In this document: positions 3,683 through 50,572 of the stretch, one piece after another | Position numbering within the stretch: the stretch's first letter is position 1 | How the letters are laid out: each line of letters begins with the position of its first letter | Assembly (NCBI GenBank): GCA_009103225.1 | Contig: RHPI01003369.1 | Coordinates: 565,500-629,499, forward strand | Length of the DNA stretch: 64,000 nt | Reading direction: 5' to 3' | Source: Chlorokybus atmophyticus | Taxonomy: Eukaryota; Plantae; Mesostigma and Chlorokybus algae | The notes under the pieces: generated by a model | Told to the model about the DNA's origin: nothing | The model's input: only the letters and a program-made list of their open reading frames with translations | Databases searched by the model: none | Program-made: the position numbers and the translations under genes

Positions 3683-4734
3683 TAGAGAGTAGCTATGCGC
3701 TTGTTTAGCAGCAGCCCTAGCTGGATTAAAGAGACATGACATGTCCAGTGTATGTCGATAGTGTACAGTTTGTCCAGGCCTGGCGTCACCCAGCAGCGTA
3801 ATCCTGTTACAAAAGTGGCGCTGCTGATAGGTGTAAGCCAGCTGGCGAGGCTTTGAGTAAAAGCAGTCAGTAGGCCAACCATTGTACGCACGCAACAGAG
3901 GGTGCTTGGTATCGAGAAAGGTGCACGCAACAGGCAAGCATTCACCCAATGGAAGTGGAGCACAATGCCGGCTCATCTCGCCACCCGCATAGGGTATAGC
4001 ATGGGTCGGAAGCAGTAGAGACAAGCAGCATGCAAGCAGGTTGTTGTGCACATGCATGGTCTCAGCTATAGGCAACACATATCACACCAGACCAACACTC
4101 ATTCCTAAATGACATGCGCGACCACCATTCCAAGGCGCTTGCATGCTACCCACCCTCTACCCCCCACCCCAACCCCAACCCCCGCGCGCGTCAGTCATGC
4201 GTGCATGCCATTGCCGGTGCTTGCTCACATCCTAGTGTATTGATTGTGCATGGCAGTGTGAGGTGTTGATGTCAGTGTCACATGTCTAGCTACAGTCGTT
4301 GCCCATGCGTTAGCTGGCGTTTGCATTGCATTGCAAATTGCAGATATAACTTGCAAATGCATTGCAACCTTGAGTCTACATGTGCCGGTGGACAACGATG
4401 AGTCCATGCAGCAGCAGCAGCAGGCCAACTCGCTTCGCACCGTCACTCGTGCCCTCGCTCCCAGCCTTTTGCCAACAACCGGCGGCCATGGCTCTGACCG
4501 GAGTATTGTGTATTGCGTAATGGCTAAGGTTGCGTCAGCTTGCCAACTCCTTAAACTCTATTACCGTTGACACACAAGTGTTCGCTGTCGGTGCTGTAAC
4601 CATACCTAACGGCCACTAGGCCAAACCGTACACAACAAACCGTCACGGTTGTGTGAAACAACCCTCAACAAACTAGTAGCTACCAGCATGACGGGGTACT
4701 GCCCCGTAAGCGAGCGCTGCGTCTACCTCAGTAG

Positions 4735-5040
4735 TCAGAGGGCCTTGAGCCACATGACCTCATCCCGATACCGCGGCCGCCGCCGGAGCTCCTCGCACCA
4801 AGATAGCCATCGATGGCGATCGCCTGTGCCCGCTGCAAGGCGCATGCCACGTGCTGATGGCAGATGCGGATGAAGCCCTCCCGACGCCGTGGCTTCGCCC
4901 CGCGTGCTGTGGCGATGTGGCGCGCATATAATCACAGCACGTGCTAGAAGTGCTCTCATAACGTCCCATGCTTGTCCATCGCGAGCGGGTAGAAGGCGTC
5001 TCCCGCCGGGTGGTCATCATTCTTGCATCGCTTGTCAACT
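4735..5040 (-). mobile_element. Decayed 3' fragment of an RLE-type (CRE/R2-like) non-LTR retrotransposon
   Basis: A minus frame broken by stops reads GDAFYPLAMDKHGTL*EHF*HVL*LYARHIATARG...ICHQHVACALQRAQAIAI. It matches the RLE C-terminal motifs (P-L-A-x-E-x-x-G-x-L; R/H-x-ACALQRA) also seen at 26.2-26.45 kb. Confidence 0.6.
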
Positions 5041-6169
5041 GCATGCGCGTGTAACCCAACACATGCTATGCATCACATCCTTTCAGGGGCCGAGTCTTAA
5101 TTGTGGCAGCACCAACGAAATCTTATCTGACACAACTTCATGAGATATTGTGGAAGTAAGCACTTACTCGTATGTTCGCATCCTTGGAAGCGATAAAATG
5201 TCCTCGCAACTGAAGTTGGTTTAACAATTGACTAGATCGAAGCACTAGTAAAACCATCTCAATGCAGCCAACGAGGGTACAATGGAGTAGCACCCCCACC
5301 ATCCGCATACTGTGCTGCGTGCCCAGTAGTACATGTACCCATTATTGTGACAAATGACAAAAGGTTGGGCACAAGCACAAAATGCAGATGTATACACAGT
5401 TGCAGCACGGCAGGTATGTGGTGGAAGAGCAGTGCTGGACACAGCAAAGGGAATAGTACTCAACTCCGCTCTGTGCATTGGGCTGCGTTGCGGTGGGTAA
5501 GGCCATCCTCATAGTGCACAGTCTCTTGTGAGCATATGCAGGCTTGTGCAGGTGCCTTGCCTGCTGGATGCAGTGAGCTAAGTGCTCGAAGCTTCTACAG
5601 CTTCAGTTGTGCGAGCTGTGCAACGGCTCATGTACGAAGTCGGGGTCATCATGTAGCGCATACGATGCAATGGTTGGAGGGTGCCTCCATGTCCTCCAAG
5701 ACAAGTACGCTAGGCCCCCATACGCACACAGCAGGAAGAAAGCGCATGCCTGTGGGACGAACACACTGTTGGACAGCTGACAGCGCTGCTGGAGTGCAAA
5801 ACCAAAACAAGCTGCGTAATGTATGGCCTGTGCAAGCCACGTACTTGCCATCTTGCTCAAGCATGACAGCCTAAGCCACGACTCCATGATGCTGCTCGAT
5901 GCATCGTGTGAGTGCAGCAACTGAGACTTCACTTGTATACCCGTGCTACATGCACTACATGCTACGACATGCCTGCTACACAGTGAACAGAATCACCGAC
6001 ATGAAAGCCGACCAGCTTAGTTAAACTGATTTAAACTACATCACCATATCAAGAAAGATGCCATACCACCACCCTTGCTTAAGGCACGCACAACGCAAAA
6101 TATGACCAACCAGCAGTCTGACGATGGTGACAGCTACATACAACGTAAACCCTGTGGACTAACAAAAAT

Positions 6170-7017
6170 TTACTGTAATTGTGTTATCTTAATTACAATA
6201 TGGCTGCTTTTGTTGGCAAGAACAGATTGCAATGTGAATAAAGATAACAAGAGCAAAACCAAACATACCGCAGCTACTTTTGGTTTCAGCTCGCCGCTGC
6301 AGACTTTGGTTTGCGCTTCTCCGACAGCGCGGTTGCATGTGACCGAGGCCAGGATCAAGCAGATAAAAGCCAGGGAGCCCGCCGCGACATTGGCCCAAAA
6401 CTCCTGCCACACACACCAGACATGAGTCCGGACTTGCAAACAAGCACAACTCCAAGCATGCACGCACACGTCGAGGACAACAGCATTGCGCATGACGTTT
6501 ACCACAATGGGTGCGAGTGGGGGTCCGTTCAGAAGCTGATACACGAGATATGTACTTGCAAGCCCCCACATAACAAGCCCTGCAGCACATCAACACAATA
6601 TAACGCGACCACTCCTGAAAGCAAGCTGCACATGATGAAATAAACCAGGAAAGAGACCACAAACTGTTGCAGTGCGTGGGAGAGTACATGCACATACCGA
6701 ACACAACAACAAACTTGAACTCCCCGTGCTGGCCGTGCTTCGAGTAGGACAGCATCAGACTCCACATCAACAGTGAGCAGACCTGCATGACAGAAACAGC
6801 AGGCAAATACTTCTGTATAGCCAGCGGAACTATGGCATGCACATGCGCATGTGACGATGATTGTTTGGTTGAGAAACAGCAGCGTGAGCAAGTGTTGCCA
6901 GATTTGCGACTACAACCACACCGCACGCACCCATTGGGCGAATGTGACGCGAAATTTCGGAGTTGATAGCGCGTCCCAATGCAGCGTAACAGCAGCTGCT
7001 GAACCAAAAGCTGGCAT
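6170..7017 (-). CDS. Four-TM MARVEL / CASP-like membrane protein
   Basis: Exons 7017-6931, 6782-6698, 6579-6470 and 6403-6170 are phase-compatible with GT-AG boundaries. The product has four hydrophobic segments (FRVTFAQWVCSLLMWSLML; FKFVVVFGLVMWGLASTYLVY; EFWANVAAGSLAFICLILASV; KVAAVCLVLLLLSLFTLQSV) and two Cys in the TM3-TM4 loop. The 3' end may be spliced further. Confidence 0.55.
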
Positions 7018-7570
7018 GGCTGCTGAAGCAGCAGGCACATGCGGGGGGCTCCGCCCCCCGCCTTACATCCAACCTAGACTAACTCTGCTTCTGCCTTAAC
7101 ACCGTTCGGGGCAACCACCCGTCGTTTGACTAGGATGAAAACTAATACCAGCTCCTTGTCGTTGCCGCCACCATCGCCGCCGACGACACCGCCGCCACCA
7201 ACACCACCGACGTCGCCGCTGCCTTCAGCAATGCCGACAAGCATAGCGTGCAGACAGCGTGCACATTGTCGACTACCGACGGTCATCAGTCGACAGTCGG
7301 TGCTTCTAGTTGCAACAAGCAGGTTGACCTCGACGACGGTAAGTGCACCTATAAGCTGCTGGGCGGCGGTGCTGCAGGCGGCGGCGGTGTGGACGAGGAG
7401 TTTGTTGTGTGGTGGATTGCCTTATCGGTCGTAGTCCTGCCTGTTTGGCGCTTCGTTCGCTGGAAGGTGTGAAAGGCGCATGTGGGTCGTTGGGGAGGCA
7501 GTGAGGGCATGGGCTAGCCCAGTGAGCTGCTACCAGCGCTGCTGCTCGGTCAGCAGCAGCAGCGTCGTTG

Positions 7571-10500
7571 ATGGAGGCGGAGGAGTGGCCGCCAGGGCTA
7601 CGGGAAGCTCTGCTGGGCGAGCTGCTGTCGTCGTCGCCAGGGTCGGCCGAGGAGACAGAGTCCTTGCTGCCGGAATTGACGCAGCAGCTCGCTGGGGCCT
7701 TTGACGACAGCGCCGACAAGGACACTGACATTCAGAACCTTACTACTAACCCTTTGCAGCTGCTGCTTGATCCGCCTGCATTGACAGCCAGGTCGCGCTT
7801 GTCGGATCGCGGAGCTGCCCGCGTGGTGTCAGCCGCACGCTGGCTGATAAGCCTTGATTCTCAAACGGCTGTTGAGGTGTGTACTCGTGAGATGCTTGGT
7901 GCTATGCTCCGACATTGTTCGCATGGTGGCATTGTAACTGTCGTATAACAAATCACATCGTCAATGACAATCATGACAACACAACCAGTTTCTGCATACC
8001 AGTTGTTGCTGCATATACAGAAATTGTTGTATGCCTTCAGATGGGCGCGGTTACAGCGCAGCATGCCCGGGGTTGCTGATTGCATGGCCCGTACTGTCAC
8101 CGACTTGCAGGGCCAACAGTTGTGAACAACAGTTTTGATGGTTCGTTTGTGATGTTGTTTGGTATGTCAGCGCTGTGGCAGCAGCTTAGGAATCAATTTG
8201 CAAAACTAGTTGCAGTAGTGAATTAAAGGTTTCAGCATTGCCTACCCTGCATGCATTACTAGCTGACAAATACGTTGCAGTCCAATATCCACCCAGACGT
8301 GGTCGGTCAGGTTGTACTGATAGTCATAACACTGTATGTTCTGCTTCTGCGTTTTGCTACATGCACAACCAGCATGTGAGCCATCAAGGGAGTCCTCATG
8401 CAGTCTCATTGCCAGTTCTATTTGCAGCACAAGTACATTGCTCTTGTTTATAACTATTGTGAACTTGATATCATTGCATAAAGTTGCCATTGTCATTAGC
8501 ATGGCAGCGGATCCATGTCAGTGTGCTATTTGATGTCTACGCTCACTTTTTGCATGCGGTTGGCAGACAGCGGGTGCGTTGCTGCGATGGTTGCAAACAG
8601 CCAATGTGGCTGCTGGCATTGAGACCGCCAATGCACTAGTGGAGTTGGTGAGCATTTTGCCATTTCAGACTCGTTCAGCCACAGGAGCAACTGCAAACAT
8701 CTCGCTTGCAGTGTTCCTGTTAGAATTCGCTGATACAGCTTATGAGGACGCGAGTGTGCCTTTCAATCTCAAGAGTTTGGTGGCAGCGCGCTTGCTGGCA
8801 CCATACCGGACGCATGTCCCGGCCAGAACCAACTTAGCAACAGGGCAGCATGACGGCCTGGCCAGCCTCATCTGCTATGGTCTGCAGCTTTGCATGGAGC
8901 TCGCATCAATTGGGCCGCTCGGACATGGCGCTGCAGCAGCATCTGCAAGCAACAGAGCAGCTACATTTGACAACGGGCAGGCACTTTTTCAGCAGTACAG
9001 TCCATTGTCTTTACTGGAGCATGTCTTGTCCTGCGAAGGACAGGTGTTCACGGGATTGCTCAGGTTGTTGACAGTAGCGGCCGCACTATGTCATAGTGAT
9101 GCTTCGGAAGGTGGTTTGAGCCCTGTCAGTGACAACCTGTTCGGCACGGACGCTGGTGCTTCTGATATCGCCTTCAGCGATGAAGAAGCATGGCTTGCAG
9201 ATCTGTTTGAAGAGGACTTGAGCTTTCGCAGCTTTGAGCACGAGCATGAGTCGGCAACTATGAATGTAAGTATTCGTGCAGCAGTGGTGCAATGCAAGAG
9301 GGTAGGGTCATGTTTCTAGGCAGTCTTGTCCTTGCTTCATGAACTGCATGCAGGTATTGCTTCTAATCTAGGGTGTGAGTATGGTGGATTTGGTATCGCT
9401 GAAGTTCCTGTTCTTGGACAGTTGTTTGGGACGCAGGACAGTACCTGGTCGCACGTCATTCAACTGGTTGCAGATATTCTCATTGACCATCGCTGGGTTT
9501 GGGTGGGGCAGTCCGGGCAGCTGCGGCCTAACCATGTCGATCAGGCAGTGGAGGCTTTGTGCAGTTTGGACTCTCAGCCTGGATTACCTCCACACTCACC
9601 TGCAAACAGGTATGTAGCCAGGGGTAACTGACTCACCGTCATATTGTTATTTTGGCCAAAATGTATCTAATGATCTGTTTTGTGGTGGAGACTAGTACGT
9701 AGGAGTAGGAGCACGTCTGTGTCAATGTGGTTCTTGACTTCTTGGACTTGACTGGTCTTATAGTTTTTGTGTTTGTAGTGTGCTGCAGGTTGTCAACGCT
9801 TTATTCGATGCAGCCAGTAATGAGGTGCAGTATTACGTGTTGCGAATACTGCTTCACGCAGTCCTGCAGCGCAGATGCACGTCGGTGGAGGTGACCAAGC
9901 TTGTGCTGAGATTGGCTGCGACAAAGGTCGCGTCAACTCATGTTGATCATGTGGCCAAAATGTTGTGGCAAGATTATTTCACGTTTGTTGGCAACGCATT
10001 CACCGATGAAAACGCCACGTTCACAGCAGCTGTGGCGGCAGTTCCCCCTCGCCATTATCTGGAGTTGTTGTTAATGTTTTATCACAGTACCAAGGAAGCA
10101 AAGCCAGATATCTTCTCTACTGCTTGCAATGCGGTTGCACAATTTCAGAGCCTTGACTCCAGCGTGCTCAGGCGTGCACCAGTGCACTTGCATGCCAGTC
10201 ACCTGCTGTCCATGCTGCAGCATCTTATCACCTATCAGCAACAGCTGCCAGCCTGGTTGGTGCTGCGCATGCAGTCACTACTCCACAATGGAGATATTGC
10301 CGATGACAGTCTGCACCCATCAAGCTTGGATTGGGCACGCGCTTATTGCGCAGCCCTCCAGCATCTGCCTTTGTACCAGTTGGTTCCAGACCCTGATGTT
10401 GCCACTGGTGCCGGCTGCGGATCTGTCAACACAGATGCACTTGTTAAGCTGCTCGAGGCCACTTTGTCTTCCCAGGAGGGTGATGGCGAACAGTTGGTTG

Positions 10501-13500
10501 CTGGTCATTGTCGCCAGCTGGTCTTTAATCTGCTTGACATGCGCAACTTACCGCAGCTGGACGTTGCATCCTCTGGGCTACAGCATGTCATGCGACTGTA
10601 CCAAGCTGGCCACCGTTTGCAGGACTCTGTGACACAGGGGATTGTCAAAGAATGTGCTGTTGAACTAGCATCAGCTGCATTGGCTGCACACCATGGTGAC
10701 GCCTCAGCCATGTTCGGCGTCAATGCTGCATTGGAGTTTGCATTGTGTCAGCTGCAGATTGCAATTAGTTCCATTGGAGTTGACGCAGGTGACTGGAGTA
10801 CTGGCATCAGGCAGTTCAGCATGATTATCCGGGGTTACAGCACGACGCTTAGTGAACTAGCTGTGAAGGCCATCGCCCATGAACATGGCGAGCGAACAGC
10901 GAAGGCTGCCCTACTGCTTCTGACCTCTGGTACAAATGCATTGCAAGCTGAAAAAATGGCTCGGTTGCCAGAAGGATACTTACATACGTTCCATCAACAC
11001 GGTTGGGAGGAATGGCAATCAAGGTCTACGGGGCTCATAAACAGCAGAAAAGGCGTGCTGCTTGAGCTGTTTGTATGGCACGGGTTCCCGCCTTTAGCTG
11101 CGTTTAGGTCCTGCCAAGCTGCACTGTATTCAGTGCTGGTTTCTGCTTCCACTCTACTCTCATCTGGGGTGCGGTTGGAGGCGCCAGACGTTGCAGTGAC
11201 CATGCTGCAGGAGGTGTCATCTATTGCAAGCAATGGCTTTTTAAGTTATGCGCATGCACCTTGCGCAAGCATTCTGCAGGTTTTAGCGGCAGACGCGTCC
11301 CATCAGTTGCAAAGGGACTGCATGTACATGCAGCATTCACTGTCTGTATTGAAAGAGGTTGGCAACCAGACGCTCAGCTCAGACATGCAAATGACAGTTC
11401 TGGCTGGAGTCAGCGAGAAGTGGCAAAAGCTGTATGAGGGGAACTTGCAAGATGCCTTTGCTGAACATCTGGGTCAGGCTCATGCTGTGCAACTGCTGCT
11501 TGAAACTCTGTCCAAGTCCCCAGCTGTTGATACCAAGACTATGGCCTTACTGGTGCTGCTTGCAAAAAATCAGCAATTGTGCAGTGACATGCGCCAATGG
11601 GTCCTTCAGTCTGATCAGGCAGTGTAAGTCGCGAGAAACTCATACCAATTTTGGTAATGCACACACTTATGCTTGCATAAGAGTTTCTACAGTATGCATA
11701 CGCATATGTTGGTAGTCTGGCATTTTTATCTTAGCAATGATTGTGCGCAGGTTCTCAGCTTGGTTGATGCCACGCATCTTGGCACCATTGCAGGAGGTGC
11801 GAAGGTTGAGTGGAGAGCTCTTGGTGCTGTGGTGTTGGGCCGGAGAAGGTCCTCAGCTGGAAGTCACGGAGCGCATACTGGCAACGCTGCTGGCATTTGT
11901 GCATCAGTCCTTTGAGATGGACAGTCATGATGCATCAGCTATTCAGGAATTGGTCACTGTGGCGCTGCAGTTGGCTTGTTCCGCTGGGCCTGTATCCAAG
12001 TCACTCCTTCATCAAGTGCTTGTGTCGCTGCAGAAGCTGTTAATTGCCGCCCTAAGCCTGTCTGATTACAACTTGCGCAGCAGTCGGCTATTACTCTTGA
12101 TCAGGATCTTGGATGGGTTTCTTGCGTACGGAGCGTTGCATACGACATCTCTCAACCCACCAGGTGACAAGAACACTGGGGCAGTTTCCGACGATACGCA
12201 TGCTTTGACCGCCGGCAATAAAGTGATGACTGCCAGCAGTTTTCCTGACCTGGATGTGGCATCTGATGACGATGAAGAGGATGCTGAGATTGTTTCTGAT
12301 AATGAAGCTGCTGGAGCAAGGGATGTATTCTCTGATGCTACAGATTTTGCTGGCTCTGATGACGAACGCGCACTTTGTTCCAAGACGTGTACATTTACCA
12401 CAAGCGGGAGCAGTTTCATGGAACAACATTGGTACTTCTGCTACACTTGCGACCTCACACTCTCCAAGGGTTGTTGCAGTGTGTGTGCGCGTGTTTGTCA
12501 CCGTGGCCACGCCGTGTCTTATTCACGTTACTCCCGCTTCTTTTGCGACTGTGGAGCCGGGTAATCAATATTGCACATCGCAGGCCAAACAAGTTGCAGA
12601 TCTCTTGCTGACTGCTTGCTCTTGTGCAGGGTCCGAGGTACCTCTTGCATGGCTCTGGCTCCTCGAGCGTACGTGCCGTCTGTCAGAGATGGGAGAATTT
12701 CTCTAAGTCCCGGCAGAGATGGAGGCATGCTTGACGGTGACAGTGACAGTGATGATGATGCAGAAGGCGCTGGTCCCAAGAAGTTGCAGCCTTTGCCAGA
12801 ACAAGTTAATGTGCATCCATCACTGCAGCAATCTGTCAAGCAGCTGCTTGTCGACTCACAGCTCGAGCGCGATTTACTTCAGATGTGCTTAGATGTCCTG
12901 CAAGCATCTGAGGACCTCAAACTCGAGCGCAACAATTTAATTGCATTTCAGAATCTGTCACTGGCTGCTGACTTGCTACCCGAGAGTGCTGAGCTGATGT
13001 CGCTGAATCGCTCATTTAAGGTGGGTAATGTCATTACTTGGGCTTCTCTGGTGGCTGACTTGTTACCTGATTGAACTGGTCTGGTCCTGCAGAGCGGGAG
13101 TCTGGATCTCAAGGTAAAGGTGGACTACCCTCTGTCGCGCGATTTGCGTAATCTGACATCAGGAGGCCAGCTAGTAAAGGCATGTGTGAGTGCTTCACAT
13201 GCTGGGCGCATTGCAGTCGGGGAAGGTGACAAGGTTGCTTTATTTGAGGCGCCTTCAGTATCGGGGCAAGCAGCAACAGTGAGTGATAAAAGCAGCCTGA
13301 AAGTGCTATCTCGCAACGCGGTGCGGTTTGAAGTGGTGCATGTGGCTTTCAATGCCATCAACGACTCCTTTTTAGCTGTTGCTGGGTAAGTACTTGCTGA
13401 TGTCCATCAAATCGTTTGCATTGTGCTAAGGTGTGGCACTGTGTGCGCTGGCTAGCGCTCAATGCTTGCAAGTGGATAGCTAACCATGTTATTGTGGCAG

Positions 13501-33140: not shown

Positions 33141-34597
33141 CATCATTAGAAATGGGTTTCGGAAAGTTAGGCTGGATGCGCAACTTTGTAATGGACGGAG
33201 CCGGATATAAATTGCGGATTTCGTAAACTTCACGGAGGTTTTGTATATATGTTGTGGCTGTAGCCGAAATATTGTTACAACCTGTCACAAACGGCACTCC
33301 GCTGGTGACAATTGTAAGCACTGAATCCTCAACAACGTTGAGGATTCGGCATTGACGTAATTGAAGGTTTAGTTCGTGAGAAAGGCATGTGTAAATCGTG
33401 ATTACGGTTGTAACCAAATCATTAACAATGCGACTGTACTCCACGCAATTGAGGACGCGGCGGTAGTATAAAAATGCATTGACGCTGCATGCTAAAGCTA
33501 TACACATCATCATGTACGTTGTGATCGATTCCATTAATAATACACCAATGTATATACTTAACAGGGTGTGTGTTACAATTGTTGCTTGCACTAGTACTAA
33601 CCCTGATGATTTCATGACCTCATCATTGCCAAGATCAACCCCACGGCCTATCAATGGCTTGCCCCGCGGCTTGCTAGTAGCAGGCCGCGGGGCAAGCAAG
33701 TACATGTAGAAGGCTGCTACTTGCATGTGTTATGATTAGTACAAGCACATGAGTTAAATACTTCCCCAACTCACCGCAAACAACCTTGCCATAACAGGTG
33801 ATGCAGGGAACTTAATGCAAACATCTGCCAATTATAAAGCGCTGCGATTGGACGGGACGGCAGGTCTAACACATTGTTCATCTTGAAGTCACCTACATCC
33901 CCGTAATTTCCTTCACGATTATGGATTAAGAATAAAAACACAGGTACCGGTAGCCGTATACATATAAACGGCTACCGGCTTATAGATGTATATACATGTA
34001 TACATATATACATTGTATATACATATGTATATGTATATATATATACATATATATATGTATGACTACTATATCCATGCGTGCAATCCATTCAACAATTCTT
34101 GCGACATGTAAGACAAGTAGGGCAACTTAAAAAGGTAATGAGAGGTACACTTGCTATGCTACGTGTCTTGTGTCGTTGTAGTCTAGTTGGTTAGGGTTTA
34201 GGTCGTAAGTCGTTGCGTGCAAACCCGACAAGCGCATCCGCACACGTTCGAAACCCGGCGACGTGGTCGCCAATCCCGCTGCGTTTTTGGTTTGCCGCAA
34301 ACTGTGGCCATAACATTTTGGGGTTAGATCACGCATTAAGTTTGATCCCCTTAATACATCATCCAACCAACAAATAGTACAGGATGTGGACATTATTGAG
34401 TTCAAGAGAAGACGGACTCCGAATGTAATGCACAATAAGTACTTGACCTTAATGGCAGCCAAATACCAAACTAAATTGTGACTGCATCAGGTAAAAATGC
34501 AAAATCCGACACGTTGCTTGCATGCGGACTCCTAATTAAGTTATTGCGAGATCTCCATTTAAGTTGAGGCAAGGCCGAACTGTTGGGGGGCCACTTC
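33141..34597. other. AT-rich ~1.45-kb insertion in chromovirus B pol (between protease and RT), flanked by TATCAA direct repeats
   Basis: Pol motif EVCKLVWDYQDI (33.10-33.14 kb) resumes as VDGLPARLPPSRSVDHRVELIEG (~34.61 kb). TATCAA occurs at 33135-33140 and 34598-34603. The insert holds an intronless minus ORF, two perfect 11-bp hairpins and a TA-rich tract. Confidence 0.65.
33981..34060. repeat. TA/TACA-rich microsatellite
   Basis: tatagatgtatatacatgtatacatatatacattgtatatacatatgtatatgtatatatatatacatatatatatgtatg. Confidence 0.85.
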
Positions 34598-35479
34598 TAT
34601 CAATGCAAGGTGGACGGACTTCCAGCTAGGTTGCCACCCTCACGGAGCGTTGATCACCGTGTAGAGTTGATTGAGGGCGTGCACAAGCCATCCTACAGGC
34701 TTGTATACAAGTTGTCACCTTTGGAGTTGGAGGAGGCCAAGAAGCAGATAGCGGATCTTCTTAATTTAAAAGATCCGCTATCTGCTTCTTGGCCTCCCCT
34801 CACTCCAAAATGGATATTTGGCTGGATGTAACCTTTCTCTAAAGAGAGGTTACATCCAGCCAAGTAAGTCACCTTATGGTGCACCAATACTATTCGTGCG
34901 AAAGACATTAGGCGAAATTTCAATGAAAAGGTGCAGTAGACGGCCGGCGATTTTCGCAACGCGCACCGCCGCCTTACTAGGGCTTTTTCGGACATACCGG
35001 TCGCGTTTAGACTCAAGACTGAAGGTCACATTGGGCAAAGTCTACGACTCAGGTAACTTGTGCTGGTCTTAACAACTGTTGGCGCCAAAGTTTAGCCCCA
35101 ACCTATACCATTAGAATGCAGTGTTTACACAGCAAGAATGAGTTTATGTTACTGTTTTGGGCAGATGTTGAGGGGGGTTTTCTGTGTATATTTGCAGCTC
35201 TTAGGCATTAGATTAGATACTCCTGTTACCAAAAGCTGCATTAACTACCACATTAACTCCCGCTAAGCTATCAGGTAGCTGGGGCGGCGGAGGAGGCAGT
35301 GCCAGCAGAGGCGGCAGGGAGGCAGTGGTGTAGGCATGTGGGCGAGGGCATTGGAGTGGCTGGTTGCATAGTAAGGCACATCAGCCGGCTACCTGCCCAG
35401 CTGGAGCTCCTTTGTGCGGCCTGGTGAGGTGAGGTTCGTGCACGACGCTGCCATCGCCGATGCTTATAGGCACGCGTGC

Positions 35480-35815
35480 ATGTGTCTGCACAGGGTGCAC
35501 GCGTGTGTTCATGCGTGTGCGTAAGGTATGATAGGCAGTGAGTGATGTGCGTACTTGTTCTGCAACGCTCTCGCTCTTGCTGGTGTGCATCTGCGCTGTC
35601 ATGTGCATAGCATGTTCAACTACGTACTTGTTGCACCCGTGACAGGTGCATGCCAGGCATGCGTGTATTCATGCTTGTGCGTGAGGTGCGAATGGAAGTG
35701 AGTGCCACAGTGTTGATGTGCGTACTTGTTTTGCAATGCACTCACTGTTGCGATATGGGTGTTTGTGATCACAGGTGCACAGCATGTCCCACTACGTACC
35801 TGTTGCACCCATGGC
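35480..35815. repeat. Imperfect tandem duplication at the transposase 5' end
   Basis: GTGATGTGCGTACTTGTT(C/T)TGCAA and ACTACGTAC(T/C)TGTTGCACCC each occur twice, ~165 bp apart. Confidence 0.6.
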
Positions 35816-38800
35816 TGCTGACGCATCCCTGCGCCTTAGTCCTGTCAAGAAAAAGCGCAAGTTTGACATACATGTGCGTGTTGACCCGGAGCTGCAACAA
35901 GGCTGGTTGCATTGGACAGTTGGCAGCAACTATGCCTGTCCTTTGCCATTCACTAATGCCACTGCACTGATTCGCTGGCTGGCTGGTGGCGGCTTGAATG
36001 CGTTCGTCACCCATCAGATACAAGCCAACAATCACCTCTATGGAGCACTCTCACGCCAGCAGTTTGCGAATGCTCAGCTGCAAACAGATGTTGCATTTAC
36101 CAAACAACAAGTGGAGCATTGGCAGCAGCAGGACGCGCTAGCACGCACTGAGATGGCAGAGGTAGAGAGGAAGTTTACGGCAGCAGCCGAGAAGCTTTCA
36201 ACTCTGCAACAGGAGTTGAAGGAGGCACAAAAGCTCGCAGCTGCTAGGCAATCTCGAAAGGACTTCAGTCAACTGAGCAAGCGAGGGCGAGCATATGCCA
36301 CCGTACATATCAAGTAAGTAATGTCACGCCCTACAACACTAGCTCAGCAACCATTGTAACGCAGCAAGCGGTCATGCATACTTGCAGTCAAGTCCGCACC
36401 GCATTGTGTCCAAGCTTTTACTAAGTTGTTGTGCTGCGCAGGGATACATTAGTCCCCGGCTGGCGCAGTTTAAGCGATGCTGATAGGGCTGAAGCCTTTG
36501 GGATAGCCTTTGCCATGTTGATTAAGACCAAGGAGATGAAGTGGGCGCTTGGCCACAGCAAGTATCTCGAGGTGATTAGGGCGTTGAAGGTATGCAGTCT
36601 TGAATAGCTGACTGTGATAACGATAAGCATGGATGCTGCATACAAGCGTTGGTTACATGTATGTGCGCACACATATGGTGTGTGTGTTTGTGTGTGCGCG
36701 CTTGTGCGTGTGTGCGTGCGCGCGTGCGTGCGTGTAGAGTGACGGACTCAACAGCATGTTTGACCATGTGGACATCAACGATATTTGCATGGTGTTGGAC
36801 ACCACTCGAGGAGAGCAGTCTTATGATGGCTTGTACAAGTTGCTGGCGCAAGCCTCTAGTGTTGCTGGCCTGAACATGCGTTTGCGAAGCAAGGATGACA
36901 AGGTGTCTGTGAACACTTGGCAGCTAGTGCAGGACAGGAGGTGAGATGCTGAGACCTTCAACACGCATGTAAGCACGCGCGTAAGCGCCAGCATGCATGC
37001 TTCCATGGCTCACGCACTGTCAAACACAAGCATGCATTGATGGTGCGTTTGCTTGATGCAGACACACCAACGACCAGACAACGGCAATTCCCATTGTCGA
37101 TACAGCCATTAATAATGGCAAACAGCTGGAGCTGGTGCGGATGTTGGATCTCTCCATTCGATTGCACAATCTACAACCAGGTGCCTTGCCGAAATGCCGA
37201 TAGTAACTTGCATAGTGTTGTTGGGTGGCACTTACTTGTTTGATTTGCAGATGTGCACTCGCCGTTGCAGATCTGCTTCTACTTAGACGAGACAACGGAA
37301 TATAACGACCGCAAGATCCAACGCATCTGTTTTTGAGTCATGAACCATGCCTTGGGGGTTGTCAACGGGACTGAGAGAGGCAAGGCCATGTCTGAGTATG
37401 ACATGCTACCAATCTCTGCGTTTCACGTGAAGAAGGAGAACCAGCAAGACATCATGGCCAATACCGAAGACATTCGATCATTCATACAACAACATGACGT
37501 GAGTGTGGAAGGCAGCACGCCCCTGCAGGTATGCAACATGTGGTGAGCGCTGTGGGTGGCAGCATTGACGATGGCTGATTCTGCTGCTGCTGGCTTGCTG
37601 CAGACATCGATGGGGGATTTTTTGATCGAATGCCATGTAGCTGGTGACTTGAAGACTCTTAAGATATGCGCGGGGTGCAGTTTGGGAGCCATGGCCAAAG
37701 AGCCCTGCTTGTACGGCCATTGCACACGTGACCATCGCGGTTTGCAAGCATGTGGGCTGCGAAGGGACTTTGCTGACACCGTCTTCCCTTTGCCCCCCGA
37801 GCGTATTCACATATGCACCATGCACGCGGACATGCGCATCGTAGAGAAGGTGCGCTTGGCATATGGCATACATCATTGAACATGACCGCACATGACACGC
37901 TGTTGTTTGCAAGGTTCTTTGGTTGCACATCAACTTCGCTTGGACCTTTGAGGGCGGTGACAACGACCAGTCACAAGCTCGCATTGCCAAGATTGAGAAG
38001 TTCCTGAGTTCCCTGTGCATTCAGGGAGGAAACTGCAAAATTGTAGCTGATGGCAAGGCCGGTCGTGAGCACTACCCCGCCAAGATATCCATGAAAGACA
38101 CGACGTGTCGAAAGCTTCTTTCTGGTACACATGGACACACATGAGCTTATACATGCATATTAGCAACCTACTAGGACTGACACTGGTTGTGGTATCAGGC
38201 GTTAATTATAGAAAGCTGCTGGCTGCTGAAGGTGATCCAAATCCCAGCCGACGTGCTGCGAAGCGAGAGGTCTGGGTGGCGCTGATAGCTCTAGCTGCGT
38301 ACTTTACCAATATGTCACTTGATGAGAGTCAGGTGGAGGCCTTCACCACATGCATCACGGATTTCATGGAGAAATTTGTTGCTTGTTGGGGAGAGCACCA
38401 TATCACCCACTACATGCACATTTTGTGGTGTCATGGCCCGGAATATGTGAGCACAGAGTCATCGTTGGCTGTATGGAGCACTCAATCTATGGAGAAGAGC
38501 CATTGGCGTTTCAAGGCAGCTTGGCAAGCTCACACTAACCATGGAGGAGGCACTGCGGAGAACTGTCCAATAGAGCAAGTCCTGCGTATGAGCTGCGATG
38601 TATACACCATAGGTTGCGAGCCAACTACTTGTGCGCATTAAGGCAGAAGTTGATGGAAGGGGACGACAACTTGCAATGGACTGTGCGCGGTTGGCGAACC
38701 GCGTATGGCAATAAAGTGGTGGGAACACAACTTTCGTCATTGCAAACCGCTACAGATTCCCTAGCTGATTTGGAGTTAGAGGTTGATATAGCAATAAAAG

Positions 38801-38844
38801 AACACTGGGACCAAATCGCTGCATTCTACAAGGAGGAAACATAG
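35784..38844 (+). pseudogene. RAG1/Transib-like (CMC-supergroup) DDE transposase, 8 exons, ~790 aa; one in-frame TGA and one frameshift
   Basis: Exons 35784-36313, 36442-36589, 36738-36940, 37062-37180, 37251-37528, 37604-37849, 37914-38124 and 38199-38844, all GT-AG and phase-compatible. Motifs: ICFYLDETT (D1), AGDLKTLKICAGCSLGAMAKEPCLYGHC (D2 + Zn), ICTMHADMRIVEK, ISMKDTTCRKLL, ITHYMHILWCHGPEYVSTESSLAVWSTQSMEKSH (HxxxxH + E). TGA at 37334-37336 (likely CGA>TGA); frameshift near 38590. Confidence 0.78.
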
Positions 38845-38919
38845 TGCAAGAACTGACTAACAATGCCATGATATGCTATACCTCACATATCATTCCAACA
38901 TGGCAGCATAACACTCAAC

Positions 38920-40996
38920 CTACACAGCCACTACCTCAACCACACCAGCCTCCTTCCACCCCCCTGAATGCGGGTGCACCGCACTCACATTGTCCTCGTC
39001 TATCATGTTCACTATCCCATCAGCCGTCTGGAACAGCCAGACTGATGGCATGTGCCACCCTTCATCAACAATTGCTTCGCGCAGCTGACTGAGCGAACAT
39101 GGTGGTGTGATGTCAATGGTGCCTAATGCATTAGCAGCGCACACAATGATGCAAGAGCGCACAGTAACCCCCGCTAGGGTCGAGGAAAATGACCGCCATG
39201 TCATTGTGCTTTGCAGCCCTTCTCCCTCGCGTGTGCCGGTGTGAAAGGGGCATCTGACTGCATGCAAAGTTTATTGAGCACCACTTAGAGGCACTACACG
39301 TTGAAAGCAAGTATGGCTATGAAGCCCAACTTACTTGACAGTAGTTGGCGCATGAGGTAGTAGCGGATGACAACATCAGCGACAACGATGCAAGCTTCAG
39401 TTCCGTTAGCAAAGTGACGGACATCCCAACCAGGGGCGATGGCATCCAATGGAGCTTTAAAACGCTGCACGGCCACCCCGTCCTCGTCGCCCTCTATGTG
39501 CGCCAGGAAAAGCAAAGACTTAGGTGATTGCTTGCAAGGCATACAACGCAGCCTTGCAGCCACCCACTCGTGGGCTGCCAACATTCAACAAGTTAGCTAC
39601 TGCATGCGTGCACGCATGCAAGCTTCCATGCATGCGTGCGCTGCAACTTACGTACGCCATGGAGCCTCACTGTTTTGGCAGTGTGCGTTGTAGCCGCCAA
39701 AGCTCCATGATTGGAGCGCGCCACCAACTGGTCAAATGGGGCGAGAACCACCTCTGGCAATGCCATAAACTGCATCCGCCAGAACTTTACAATGTTGCGT
39801 TTTACCTTGATGCTGCCAAATTCGGAGTCATCTCTGGGCAGCTTGTACCTGTTAATGCATGCGTGCGAATACAAACTAAGCACAATGCAATGCATGGCAT
39901 ATCAACCAACAAGAGCTGTACCTGTATTGATAAAAGTAAACAGGCCTATCAGCTGCCGGTGCTGACTTGCTGAACTTCAAGGCAAACATATGCCAAGGTA
40001 ACACGTCGCACATTCGCACAATCAACCTTGGATCCAAGTCTTCTTTTTCGTCTCCCTCAAACACCTCTGCACAGTTGCGGGATGAGCTAGTTCACGTGCA
40101 TATGCATGCTTTAAAGCATGAGTGTATGCAACACACAATGGGATCGCACATACCATGAGGTCGTGGTTGTAGCGGATGCTGCAACTCCAAGTGATGATGA
40201 TGGACGTAGTGTTGTACGCGCAAGAAGCTCTTGCGTCCTTTACTTGGCTGCAGCGCTAATACCTTGACCACCCAAGGCAGCTGACGAAGCTGCTCTGTGA
40301 GGGCCAACTCAGCCCAATAGCCATGCTGTGGTGGGGTTATCTCATAGCACCCTCCCACTTGCAGGCTCAAGTTGCCGAACTTGTATGCTGCTGGCTTTAA
40401 GCGCGGACGCCGACCTGGGTTGATAAGGAACAATTGTGCACAGCAATTTAGGGACAAGCCAATGCACACAACATGCGCATGACATCACGATAGAGTTGTG
40501 CTTGATGTGTGCCTGCTGCGTGCATATGCTGCATGTGCACATCGCATGCAGCTGCGTATACAAACAAGGGACACGCCAATGCACACAGCTTGCGCATGCT
40601 ATCACAATAGGTTGCAATTGTGCTTGATGTGTGCCTGCTGCGTATGCTGCATGTGCACATCATTTGCAGCTGCGTGCGTATACACGCAATGGACACGCTA
40701 TTGCCCACAGCTTGCGCATGCCATCACAATAGGTCGTGCTTGATGTGCGCCTGATGCGTATGCTGCATGTGCACAGCATCGTATGCACACAAGGGACATG
40801 CCAATGCACACAGCTTGCGCATGCCATCACAATAGGTTATGCTTGATATGTGTCTGCTGCATGTGCACACCGCATGCAGCTGCGTGCGTATACACGCCGC
40901 ACAGCAACGAAAGCAGCATGGCAGATCTAGAGTAAAAACGAGTGTTTACTTACCTCTTCTGGAGCTGACGACCTCAGCCCCCACCTCGCTCTGCAT
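38920..40996 (-). CDS. Transposon-borne BAH-domain protein (BAH + CxxC...CxxH module + small C-terminal domain), 6 exons, 407 aa, intact
   Basis: Exons 40996-40954, 40414-40154, 40066-39922, 39848-39652, 39574-39335 and 39257-38920 total 1224 nt, in frame, all GT-AG. BAH pattern: LQVGGCYEITP...PWVVKVLAL...FLRVQHYVH...EVFEGDEKEDLDPRLIVRMCDVLPW...VYFYQYRY. The ATG exon is the best phase-compatible candidate. Confidence 0.75.
40440..40900. repeat. ~115-125-bp tandem repeat (about 4 copies) in intron 1 of the BAH gene
   Basis: Recurrent GCCAATGCACACAGCTTGCGCATG(C)...ATCACAATAGGT...TGCTTGATGTG(T/C)GCCTG units. Confidence 0.8.
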
Positions 40997-43990
40997 CCCA
41001 TCACCCACGCCCCCGCCCGTTGCCACGCACTGACCCCGTCATACAACAGTGGGTTTCAACTGGCGCCATCTAAACTAAGCGTCCCCGACAATCTGGTGTA
41101 CCCGCTGGCACCAGCGCGGTCGCCGCCGCCGCCGCCGCCGCCGCCACCGCCAACAACCACGCCCACACCGCCGCCACCAGGCCTGCTAACCTAGCCGCCA
41201 GCATCCAAGTAACGGGAGGAGAACAGCAGAGTCAAGACGTGCGGCTTGACTGGACCAGCTCGCTGACTTGGCAGTCGCTTACTACTTGCTGCAACGATGG
41301 ACACTCGAGTCGCACCTCATTGGTCCACAGCTATTATGAATTGATGGCCGTCGAGGGGTCCATTGCACCGGTTTAATTGGAACTTTGCCTAATGAGAACG
41401 GGAGCCTGCGTATGTGCATTGACTACCAAGTGCTCAACACCATTACAAAGAAGCACTGCTTCCACTACCGCGTATTGACGAGTTGCTGGAGCAGCTACAA
41501 AGTGCGCAGTACTTTACCACACTTGATCTTGCTGGAGGTTATCATCAGATCCACATCGCACTTGAGGACGTGGAGAAGACAGCGTTCAACACGCGCTATT
41601 GACGTTATGCATGGTCAGTGGTGTCGTTTGGGCTTACGAACACGCCAGCGACATTTTAGACGTTGATGAACAGCGTTTTTGCTGACTTGCCGGGTAAGGG
41701 AGTCCTCGTGTACCTCGACGACATTTTTGTGTACTCGAAGACGAAGGATGAGCATGTGAGTTTTCTACGGTGCATGTTGCAGCGTTTACGGGAGCACAAG
41801 TCTAACGCTCAGCTACAGAAGTGCAACTTTTTGCTACGCGAGGTGGAGTACCTGAGCCACATTGTGTCACACGAAGGGATCAAGCCGGACCCCAACAAAG
41901 TGCAAGTGGTGCGCGAATGGTTTGCCCCAACCAACGTGAAGGAGGTAATGTCGTTTTGGGGCCTTGCCGGGTATTATCGCAAGCTTATCGTGGGATTTTC
42001 GTGCAATGCGGCCTCTTTAACCACCCTACTCGAGAAAGGGAAGTCTTGGAGCTGGTCTGCAAAGGAAAAGCATGCATTTGCTGCATTGAAGAAGGCGTTG
42101 ATAGAGGCAACCGTCTTGGCTCACCCCGACATGGACAAACCCTTCATTTTGGCTTATGACGCATCCAACACAGCTGTGGGAGCCGTGTTACAGCAAAACC
42201 AATGCATGGGTTTTCAACCTGTAGCGTTCTTTACTAACAAACTGAGTGGAGCAGAGCTGAACTACCCTGTGCGCGAGAAGGAGCTATTGGCGCGAGTGAT
42301 GGCGCTGCGACAATGGCGATGCTTTCTTGAGGTCAAAAGGTTCGTGCTGGAGACTAACCATTCCCCATTGAGGTACTTACAAACACAGCCACATCTGAGC
42401 CGGAGACAAGGGCGGTGGTTGAAGTTCTTGCAACTTTTTCATTTTGAGAGTAAGTACAAGCCCGGTACGTCTTGGGAGTGTGGCCGATGTGCTAAGCCGG
42501 TTGAATGCGATTAAAGAACTCGCTCAAGTGCAACCGGAGTGGGCCGACCAGATCCAACAAGTGCTTTGCGAAGACACAGAAGGTAGGAGAGCCTTGCGGG
42601 ACATGGGGAGTACAGTAATGGACACAAGTGGATATTGGACAAAGCAAGACGGCGTACTCTGGCATCATGGCCGCTTGTACATCCCCAATGTTGCACATAT
42701 ACGCGTTCAACTTTCAAAGGAAGCTCGTGACGTACCCATGGCTGGCCACTAAGGCGTGGAGAGGACGTCACCAAGCTTGAAACAACGCTTTTACTGGCAG
42801 GAGATGCATCGTTATGTACGCGACTATGTGGCATTATGCGGCGCATGTCAAAGGGTGAAAGCAAGCAACCAAAAGCCAGGTGGGTTGCTACAACCTCTTC
42901 CCGTGCCATTGTCCAAGTGGGAGGAAGATACTATGGACTTTGTTACGGGCCTGCCGAAGACAACAGAAGGGTACGACGTAGTACTCGTGTTCATCGGACA
43001 AAACTAGCAAAATGGTACGCTTGGCACCGTGTTGTGAGTCTTGCACAGCACCAGAGACAGCAAGCTTGTTTATGAAGCATGTCTTTCGTTCCCACGGACT
43101 ATCACGAAGCATTGTGAGCGATCGTGATCCCCGCTTCACAAGTAAGTTTTGGGAGGCGCTGCATAGTGCACAGGGTACTACCTTAAAGTTTAGCACAGCT
43201 TTTTACCCGCAAACTGATGGTTACATGGAGCGGGCCAACCGTGTGATTGAAGATATGTTTCGCTGCTACGTGAATGCACGGGAAGACAATTGGGCGGAGT
43301 TGCTGGAAGTGGTGGAAATTGCCATTAACAACCACACGAATGCAAGCACGGGTGTCACCTTTTTGCTCATGAACTACGGCCAACACCCGCTGACACCGCT
43401 GACGGCGTGGACCCCGCGACGAAGTGACGTTGATGTGGAAGCAGTACACGATTTTTACAACGTGTGACATCAACAAGGCACCGAGAGAGGCGCTATTGGT
43501 GGCACAAAATAGGCCAAAACAGTACGCAGACGCGCATTGCCGACGTGTCACATTTCAAGAAGGCGACATGGTATTGCAATCTGCGAGAAACTTACAGGTG
43601 CGTGCTGGAGTTCACAAGTTAAGTGAGCGCTGGCTTGGGCCATTTCGCTTCATCAAAGTGGTTTTGGACGTGGCGTACAAGTTGCAACTGCCCGACTTTA
43701 TGCACATCCACCCTGTCTTTTACATATCCCTGCTGAAATTATATCGAGGAGAGCCACCATTGCGTCCACCGCCTGAGTTGGCTACGGAAGGTCATATGGA
43801 AGTGGAGGACATATATGGTGCGCAACATGCGCAAACATTTGGTGAAGTGGAAAGGCTACCCGATGCATGAAGCCACTTGGGAACCGGAGGAGCACTTGGC
43901 AAATGCACAACATATCGTGCAACAGTATTTGCAACAACGACCAGAGAATCCTGGAGAGCTTCGGACGAAGATCACCTTGGGGGGGAGGAG

Positions 43991-50376: not shown

Positions 50377-50572
50377 NNNNNNNNNNNNNNNNNNNNNNNN
50401 NNNNNNNNNNNNNNNNNNNNNNNNNNNNNNNNNNNNNNNNNNNNNNNNNNNNNNNNNNNNNNNNNNNNNNNNNNNNNNNNNNNNNNNNNNNNNNNNNNNN
50501 NNNNNNNNNNNNNNNNNNNNNNNNNNNNNNNNNNNNNNNNNNNNNNNNNNNNNNNNNNNNNNNNNNNNNNNN
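50377..50572. other. Assembly gap (196 N) followed by a poly-C run
   Basis: Direct observation. Confidence 1.

Follow-up and report, generated by a model that had tools for sequence, protein, structure and literature searches.

A decayed, probably two-component DNA transposon with a RAG1-type transposase core in the plant-lineage alga Chlorokybus atmophyticus

A 6,489-bp element in the genome of the plant-lineage alga Chlorokybus atmophyticus is, with a probability that we put at about 0.75, a decayed copy of an autonomous cut-and-paste transposon that is bounded by terminal inverted repeats (TIRs), encodes a DDE transposase with a RAG1-type core, belongs to the CACTA/Mirage/Chapaev/Transib (CMCT) clade and carries, tail-to-tail with the transposase gene, a partner gene that its lineage has kept. 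The element occupies positions 34906-41394 of the window, by which we mean the whole stretch of 64,000 nucleotides that was analysed (assembly GCA_009103225.1, contig RHPI01003369.1, positions 565,500 to 629,499 of the forward strand), and all coordinates given here are those of the window (Table 1). A first-pass annotation of the same letters had described a two-gene TIR element of about 6.5 kb inside a gypsy-type reverse transcriptase (RT) and had likened it to ProtoRAG; the element, its position and its gene layout stand, while the specific assignment to Transib or ProtoRAG does not.

The host sequence sets the boundaries of the element. The frame of a gypsy-type pol gene is cut exactly at the arms, reading ..SPYGAPILFVRK / ..KSPYGAPILFVRK before the left arm and NGSLRMCIDYQVLN.. 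after the right one, and the downstream flank matches RVT_1, RT_RNaseH_2 and RT_RNaseH (E 1e-10 to 6e-31; RVT_1 with RT_RNaseH_2 at E 5.6e-31). Because the TIRs stand exactly at the frame break and the RT domains lie in the right flank, we conclude that the element is an insertion in a gypsy-type RT. The arms are imperfect, as first described, and shorter than the roughly 30 bp then given to them, pairing over 23 nt with 83% complementarity (5'-CATTAGGC...GCCTAATG-3'). The termini, CATTAGG...CCTAATG, show the 5'-CA..TG-3' ends by which the CMCT clade is recognised, and the terminal CATNAGGC is common to this element and to the termini of a related element at three loci of another organism (L003, L004 and L005). 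Subterminal repeats lie at both ends. The flanks read ..AAAGA / AGAAC.., an arrangement in which AGA on either side fits a 3-bp target-site duplication (TSD), with no 5-bp duplication, and the two AGA copies are probably such a TSD.

Between the arms, eight plus-strand exons and six minus-strand exons, all with GT-AG junctions, converge on stop codons at 38842-38844 and 38920-38922 that are 75 nt apart, as the first-pass annotation had read them. Both splice models are sequence-based predictions, and the transposase and partner of the window were scanned exon by exon. Joined together, exons 2-8 of the plus-strand gene align with intron-free relatives in a single high-scoring segment pair (P0103, aa 221-757, E 4e-63; L003, aa 189-718, E 4e-51), and this uninterrupted alignment validates the transposase splice model. 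The transposase gene of the present copy is broken by one stop codon and one frameshift, both recognised at first pass (at 37334 and near 38590), and its eight exons join in phase; the partner open reading frame (ORF) is still intact.

The residues expected of a transposase of this kind fall in order along the broken gene. Two aspartates and a glutamate (codons beginning at 37286, 37646 and 38492) align with family-conserved columns and form the predicted DDE triad. About 20 residues past the second aspartate, relatives carry the cysteine motif PC-LY-C, and the present copy reads PCLYGHC, which can be taken either as C(4)C or as C(3)H; further downstream follows H(4)H. Taken with the modelled fold of a relative, described below, these residues describe a core of RAG1/Transib type: an RNase-H fold that bears the DDE triad, zinc ligands in the H(4)H motif and, in relatives, in C(2)C, and domains for the helical insertion and the C-terminus.

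Two features of the relatives concern this zinc site. A subgroup consisting of P0016, P0008 and P0103 keeps the DDE residues but has lost the two cysteines of C(2)C as well as the second histidine of H(4)H, and the zinc site used by RAG1 and Transib thus appears dispensable there. In many relatives (the metagenome loci L015-L017, L019-L022, L025 and L026) the H(4)H histidines are also parted by an intron, placed directly behind ..ITHYM (query aa 651/652); the present gene lacks this intron, which is a potential phylogenetic marker within the transposase family.

The affinity to RAG1 was sought by sequence and by fold. No single exon piece of the transposase matches a Pfam family, and exon 8 alone, searched against the PDB, brings RAG1 chains to the top at non-significant E values (0.25-1), over an alignment that falls exactly on YLHKTLAH...EGNESGN. 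A HMMER search of 1.8 billion representative sequences with exon 8 gave 75 relatives, and the ten that were looked up, mostly on short metagenome or metatranscriptome contigs, had no name or an uninformative automatic one; a word-index protein search with P0016, alignment A1 and partner exon 6 returned the query itself with one relative, or nothing, the index being insensitive here. When a profile of 38 family members was searched against the PDB, all 16 matches were RAG1 or amphioxus RAG1L (best E 4.6e-6), over 140 residues that stretch from MNGxxxRKLL by way of H(4)H as far as the catalytic E962; HzTransib was absent from these matches at E <= 10. The Pfam family found most often among the members is RAG1 (PF12940), matched by 5 of the 38 (best E 2e-5, just below the cut-off), and no member reaches its gathering score, the best relative scoring 23.4 bits where the cut-off is 25. 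None of the 38 matches Transposase_21, DUF4218, Transpos_assoc or Transposase_24 at E <= 0.1.

Structural comparison was made with a relative of 635 aa, P0016, whose AlphaFold2 (AF2) model has a mean predicted local distance difference test score (pLDDT) of 79 and a predicted template modelling (TM) score, pTM, of 0.75. RAG1, BbRAG1L and HzTransib fill the top 49 Foldseek places for this model (best E 5.6e-12), a fold match far above that to any other solved transposase. To our knowledge, the PDB holds no CACTA, Mirage or Chapaev transposase, and RAG1 as the best solved match therefore cannot separate Transib from its relatives. A shape search of the ESM Atlas placed unnamed clusters from Mucoromycota and Rotifera first (TM 0.64-0.67) and a DUF1280-bearing cluster next (TM 0.58), followed by a tie at TM 0.57 between CACTA clusters (Transposase_21/DUF4218) and a Transib-type cluster from arthropods (RAG1_RNase_H); DUF4218 is also among the language-model neighbours of exon 8. 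The N-terminal transposase exon is conserved across the family, and a profile of this domain (A5) finds coiled-coil proteins only in the PDB and no RAG1 nonamer-binding domain (NBD). Among the RAG1 motifs that the first-pass annotation had proposed, those of the C-terminal part (MNG..RKLL, H(4)H and E962) are thus borne out by HMMER and the collinearity of the core is supported by the fold of the homologue, and the proposed NBD helix finds no support. On the predicted structure and these alignments, both the fold of the transposase and the motifs of its C-terminal part are RAG1/Transib-like.

The minus-strand partner gene, once spliced, gives 1,224 nt in frame and a protein of 407 aa with no internal stop. 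Pfam returned nothing for any of its exons even at E <= 10, neither Kelch nor PHD nor another family, nor do its length and composition point to a propeller of six blades. Nothing, then, suggests a RAG2-like propeller, in agreement with the earlier proposal of a partner other than RAG2. Language-model neighbours of its exon 2 are BAH clusters (0.85), the ten best named ones all being BAH, and those of its last exon are weak matches to families of ubiquitin-like fold (0.76-0.79). Among the relatives, the minus-strand ORF nearest the right TIR of L003 matches Pfam BAH (PF01426) below threshold (E 0.0024, 18 bits against 30.8), and the N-terminus of the L007 partner shows a BAH-like pattern by eye, in a protein whose AF2 model is poor (pLDDT 32). 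From these weak leads we would give roughly even odds that the N-terminal ~150 aa of the partner form a BAH domain.

The partner gains its weight from its recurrence. Related loci were sought with the trimmed transposase alignment A3 among others, and every one with enough 3' sequence (12 or more) carries a long convergent ORF on the opposite strand, 3' of the transposase (L001, L002, L003-L006, L007, L010, L014, L019, L021, L023, L024 and L025); the convergent partner is thus found again in relatives from other organisms. Within one group of six loci (group J, which includes the 627-aa ORF of L025), the partners are homologous at E 1e-15 to 1e-50, with 25-40% identity where the transposases have 42-57%, a pattern in which the partner diverges in step with the transposase but faster; the partners of L007 and L024 are likewise homologous to each other (E 5e-11). 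Since the partner evolves faster than the transposase, no similarity between groups is expected even under common descent, and the lack of it equally allows independent acquisitions. We conclude that this is a two-component element with a non-RAG2 partner, conserved across its relatives, and this conserved convergent partner is both the part of the earlier idea that gained most and the feature of most value for follow-up.

One relative gives a view of a complete element. The metagenome contig L003 (1-10951; also L004-L006) contains an element of ~10.8 kb from another organism, with TIRs of 46 nt (84-129 / 10820-10865) ending CATGAGGCC...GGCCTCATG, three ORFs that share a split transposase between them and a series of ORFs on the minus strand, of which the BAH-like one stands beside the right TIR. 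The minus-strand series includes an internal duplication (3944-5086 resembles 6614-7273, and 5474-6088 resembles 7447-8274). The contig opens with the final 14 nt of a different copy's right end, after which come CCCTAA-like repeats, and the assembler contig L005 starts exactly at the conserved terminus.

An interpretation that would remove the partner from the transposon holds that the minus-strand gene is a captured host fragment or an unrelated nested gene, and that the convergent genes at the other loci are independent acquisitions. It would account for the partners of different groups not being detectably homologous and for the failure to find any homologue of the window's partner, and it is at ease with an intact partner beside a broken transposase, which is statistically unremarkable when a stretch of 1.2 kb should carry about one lesion. 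Against capture speaks the identical placement and direction of the gene at all 12 or more loci whose sequence reaches far enough, as does the retention of the group J partner while the transposases have diverged to 42-57% identity; a faster-evolving partner is expected to sink below detection at the divergence between groups, and the gene lies wholly within the TIRs, with the right subterminal array housed in its first intron. We therefore regard capture as unlikely and the partner as a component of the transposon.

The placement of the transposon among named lineages allows more readings. The CMCT clade, which comprises EnSpm/CACTA, Mirage, Chapaev, Transib, Plavaka and ESTA as well as Lanisha, is defined by C(2)C and H(3-4)H motifs, mostly 5'-CA..TG-3' termini and TSDs of 2-5 bp, and HHpred similarity to RAG1 has already been reported for its lineage ESTA (Kojima, 2025; PMC12730594). 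The termini, the H(4)H motif, the C(2)C motif as relatives have it and the possible 3-bp TSD of our element fit this clade, as the first-pass annotation had supposed in naming the CACTA/Mirage/Chapaev/Transib supergroup, and we assign the element to this broad group, its membership in Transib or ProtoRAG specifically not being established. A true place inside the Transib superfamily, which is RAG1's direct sister or ancestor group, would make it a ProtoRAG-like two-gene Transib in a green-plant lineage; in our estimate this is quite unlikely. The sequence-level matches in PDB and Pfam to RAG1 only, the fold match to RAG1 and HzTransib far above other solved transposases and the convergent layout of ProtoRAG all favor that reading; the canonical Transib hallmarks, a 5-bp TSD and a CACNNTG terminal heptamer, are absent at our element, and a 2026 preprint reports that these hallmarks are not invariant and that some true Transibs make 3-bp TSDs. 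Set against it, the RAG1 best match is non-discriminating with no CMC (CACTA, Mirage or Chapaev) transposase in the PDB, the Atlas CACTA clusters equal the Transib-type cluster and unnamed clusters surpass both, the family profile misses HzTransib, no member reaches the Pfam RAG1 gathering score, the termini are CATTAGG, and the partner has no Kelch or PHD signal. The opposite assignment, to an ordinary divergent EnSpm/CACTA element whose two genes are counterparts of TnpD and TnpA, draws on the possible 3-bp TSD, on CATTA termini one mismatch from CACTA, on the two genes and the subterminal arrays at both ends, and on fold scores of TM 0.57-0.58 to plant Transposase_21/DUF4218 clusters together with the DUF4218 neighbour of exon 8. 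We consider it very unlikely, because the four EnSpm-type Pfam families match no member where RAG1 is matched five times, the genes are convergent and not co-transcribed as in En/Spm, and by structure the family stands closest to unnamed clusters of fungi and rotifers rather than to CACTA of plants. Within the CMCT clade, Lanisha is the likeliest named home of the family, at about an even chance, a guess made by names and published tree: the source is a plant-lineage genome and the best structural neighbours are Mucoromycota clusters, and the family may therefore be Lanisha. Lanisha is a cut-and-paste superfamily, EnSpm-like, proposed in 2020/21 on material from Ceratodon purpureus, a moss (Maumus, McDaniel & Carey, 2020, Repbase Reports; Carey et al., 2021, PMC8245031; GenBank MT647524), and in the tree of PMC12730594 its members, which come from Rhizophagus irregularis (of the Mucoromycota), from a coral and from a cDNA, fall between Transib and Chapaev with weak support. 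With this plant-lineage proposal already made, the earlier suggestion of a family undescribed in green plants is doubtful and not established. A bolder version, in which the family is an undescribed deep CMCT lineage separate from Lanisha that spans streptophyte algae, fungi, rotifers and unsampled protists and has an ancestral, obligatory and fast-evolving convergent partner, strikes us as rather doubtful.

Several observations weigh against the reading of a CMCT transposon with a lineage-kept partner, or against parts of it. The clade placement is based on fold scores and on Pfam and PDB matches, not on a tree with named CMC, Transib or Lanisha sequences, and the structural evidence is that of a homologue with only ~27% identity and not of the broken protein encoded in the window. 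The TSD is put in doubt by diverged copies of the host retroelement in low-coverage DNA run X1 of the same organism, which read ..CCAAAGAAA|AACGGG (..PKKNG..); joining the flanks directly, with no TSD removed, gives ..RKKNG.. and restores the usual RT spacing, and we therefore hold the TSD as ambiguous. The related element L003 shows no visible TSD, and a search of the 64-kb window for a second copy found one copy only. No similarity was detected between the partners of different groups or to the window's partner by tblastn, blastp, shuffled Smith-Waterman or hhalign, and the common descent of the partners is deduced from position and divergence rate. The BAH assignment has no support from Pfam or from PDB sequence searches, the latter returning only His-tag artefacts, or nothing, for partner exon 2 and the BAH-like ORF of L003. 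RNA sequencing of the same organism was looked for and none was found, one low-coverage DNA data set being all that there was.

If the two-component reading is correct, the transposase would recognise the CATNAGGC termini, excise the element and reinsert it, probably at a target cut with a 3-bp stagger. The partner would be a fast-evolving accessory factor, encoded convergently from the other end and kept by the whole lineage, with a role that may resemble that of TnpA in En/Spm or RAG2 in ProtoRAG, such as synapsis of the ends, or end or chromatin binding and targeting; it might act through a possible BAH-like domain, binding the subterminal arrays or nucleosomes. The present copy would need transposase supplied in trans.

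Table 1. Features of the element and its insertion site, in window coordinates.
Feature	Position	Strand	Remarks
Left TIR	34906-34928	.	5'-CATTAGGCGAAATTTCAATGAAA; begins exactly at the host RT frame break
Right TIR	41372-41394	.	ends ...GGAACTTTGCCTAATG-3'
Possible 3-bp TSD, AGA	left 34903-34905, right 41395-41397	.	ambiguous
Host gypsy-type pol (rest of RT and RNase H)	41395-42514	+	upstream part stops at 34905
Subterminal direct repeat, ~170 bp x 2	35470-35813	.	just upstream of transposase start, overlapping it
Subterminal tandem array, 122 bp x 3.4	40450-40837	.	within partner-gene intron 1
Transposase gene, 8 exons, ~793 codons, now pseudogene	35784-38844	+	gene model, all GT-AG; exons 35784-36313, 36442-36589, 36738-36940, 37062-37180, 37251-37528, 37604-37849, 37914-38124, 38199-38844
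First catalytic Asp (FYLDETT)	37286-37288	+	aligned to ITLDET of P0016/P0008/P0103; strand beta-1 of P0016 model
In-frame TGA, exon 5	37334-37336	+	sense codon in relatives (..ERVCIKV.. vs ..QRICF*V..)
Second catalytic Asp (HVAGDLKTL)	37646-37648	+	PCLYGHC after it; relatives PCLYC = C(2)C motif
H(4)H motif THYMHILWCH	His codons 38417-38419, 38432-38434 (region 38417-38494)	+	aligns to RAG1 YLHKTLAH (ZnH2)
Catalytic Glu (SMEKSH)	38492-38494	+	aligns to RAG1 EGNESGN, E962; invariant columns in family
1-nt frameshift, exon 8, approximate site	38583-38590	+	..PIEQVLR -> YELRCIHHRLR.., continuous in relatives
Partner gene, 6 exons, intact 407-aa ORF	38920-40996	-	GT-AG junctions, phases consistent; exons 40996-40954, 40414-40154, 40066-39922, 39848-39652, 39574-39335, 39257-38920

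The host pol ORF also holds, about 100 bp upstream of the element (34716-34870), two inverted flank duplications that abut. In one, A at 34720-64 and A' at 34765-809 pair over 45 nt (89%) with no spacer; after 5 nt of filler (ATGGA), B' at 34815-38 and B at 34843-66 pair over 24 nt (92%), parted by a spacer of 4 nt. The sequence of flank, reverse-complemented flank, filler, reverse-complemented flank and flank may bear on the chemistry, since it is that expected of a break with both ends capped by hairpins and opened off-centre, as after excision of hAT, Transib or RAG type, and nothing links the duplications to the present element. Palindrome centres of this type number five in the 64 kb; a count of palindromes also lists 33986-34130 and 50393-50555, which are further short-spacer centres or simple repeats of TA/CA type.

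Accounts of where RAG1 came from usually run by way of the Transib and ProtoRAG elements of animals, and here a complete RAG1-type core, with its fold, zinc ligands and catalytic glutamate region, is found in a transposon of a plant-lineage alga. As no member scanned reaches the threshold of a Pfam transposase model and no looked-up relative is named as a transposase, the lineage goes unrecognised by protein-family databases, and annotators therefore currently miss the family. If a tree confirms the placement and the partner proves functional, the family would offer a tractable outgroup for asking how transposases of RAG1 fold recruit accessory or chromatin-reading partners, and for dating the two-gene layout. 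Were the deep-lineage reading true, a RAG1-like transposase with a convergent accessory gene would be an arrangement that is ancient, or recurs, among RAG1-fold transposons and no innovation of the deuterostomes, and in the present family the partner would bring a chromatin reader (BAH) much as RAG2 brings a PHD finger.

Comparison with the known systems places the element near several of them. It shares with the CMCT clade at large the DDE triad, H(4)H, the CA..TG termini and a detectable similarity to RAG1, and differs in that its family falls below the threshold of every Pfam transposase model. With Transib, RAG1 and ProtoRAG (HzTransib 6PQN-6PQY; RAG1 4WWX and 3JBW; BbRAGL 6B40) it has in common MNG..RKLL, H(4)H and the catalytic glutamate, as aligned by HMMER, and with ProtoRAG the two convergent genes between TIRs; its termini, in contrast, are not heptamer-like, its TSD is not of 5 bp, its partner is not RAG2-like, its N-terminal domain has no NBD match, and its relative is fitted equally well in fold by CACTA transposases. 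En/Spm, a CACTA element with TnpD and TnpA, resembles it in having two proteins, subterminal repeat arrays, a 3-bp TSD (here a possible one) and termini starting with CA (the terminal pentamers being CATTA here and CATGA in L003, against CACTA); unlike the convergent genes of our element, those of En/Spm are alternative splice forms of one transcript, and our family has no Transposase_21, Transposase_24 or DUF4218 signal. Lanisha, finally, matches it in its plant-lineage source and in having a Mucoromycota member, as the best structural neighbours of the family are Mucoromycota clusters.

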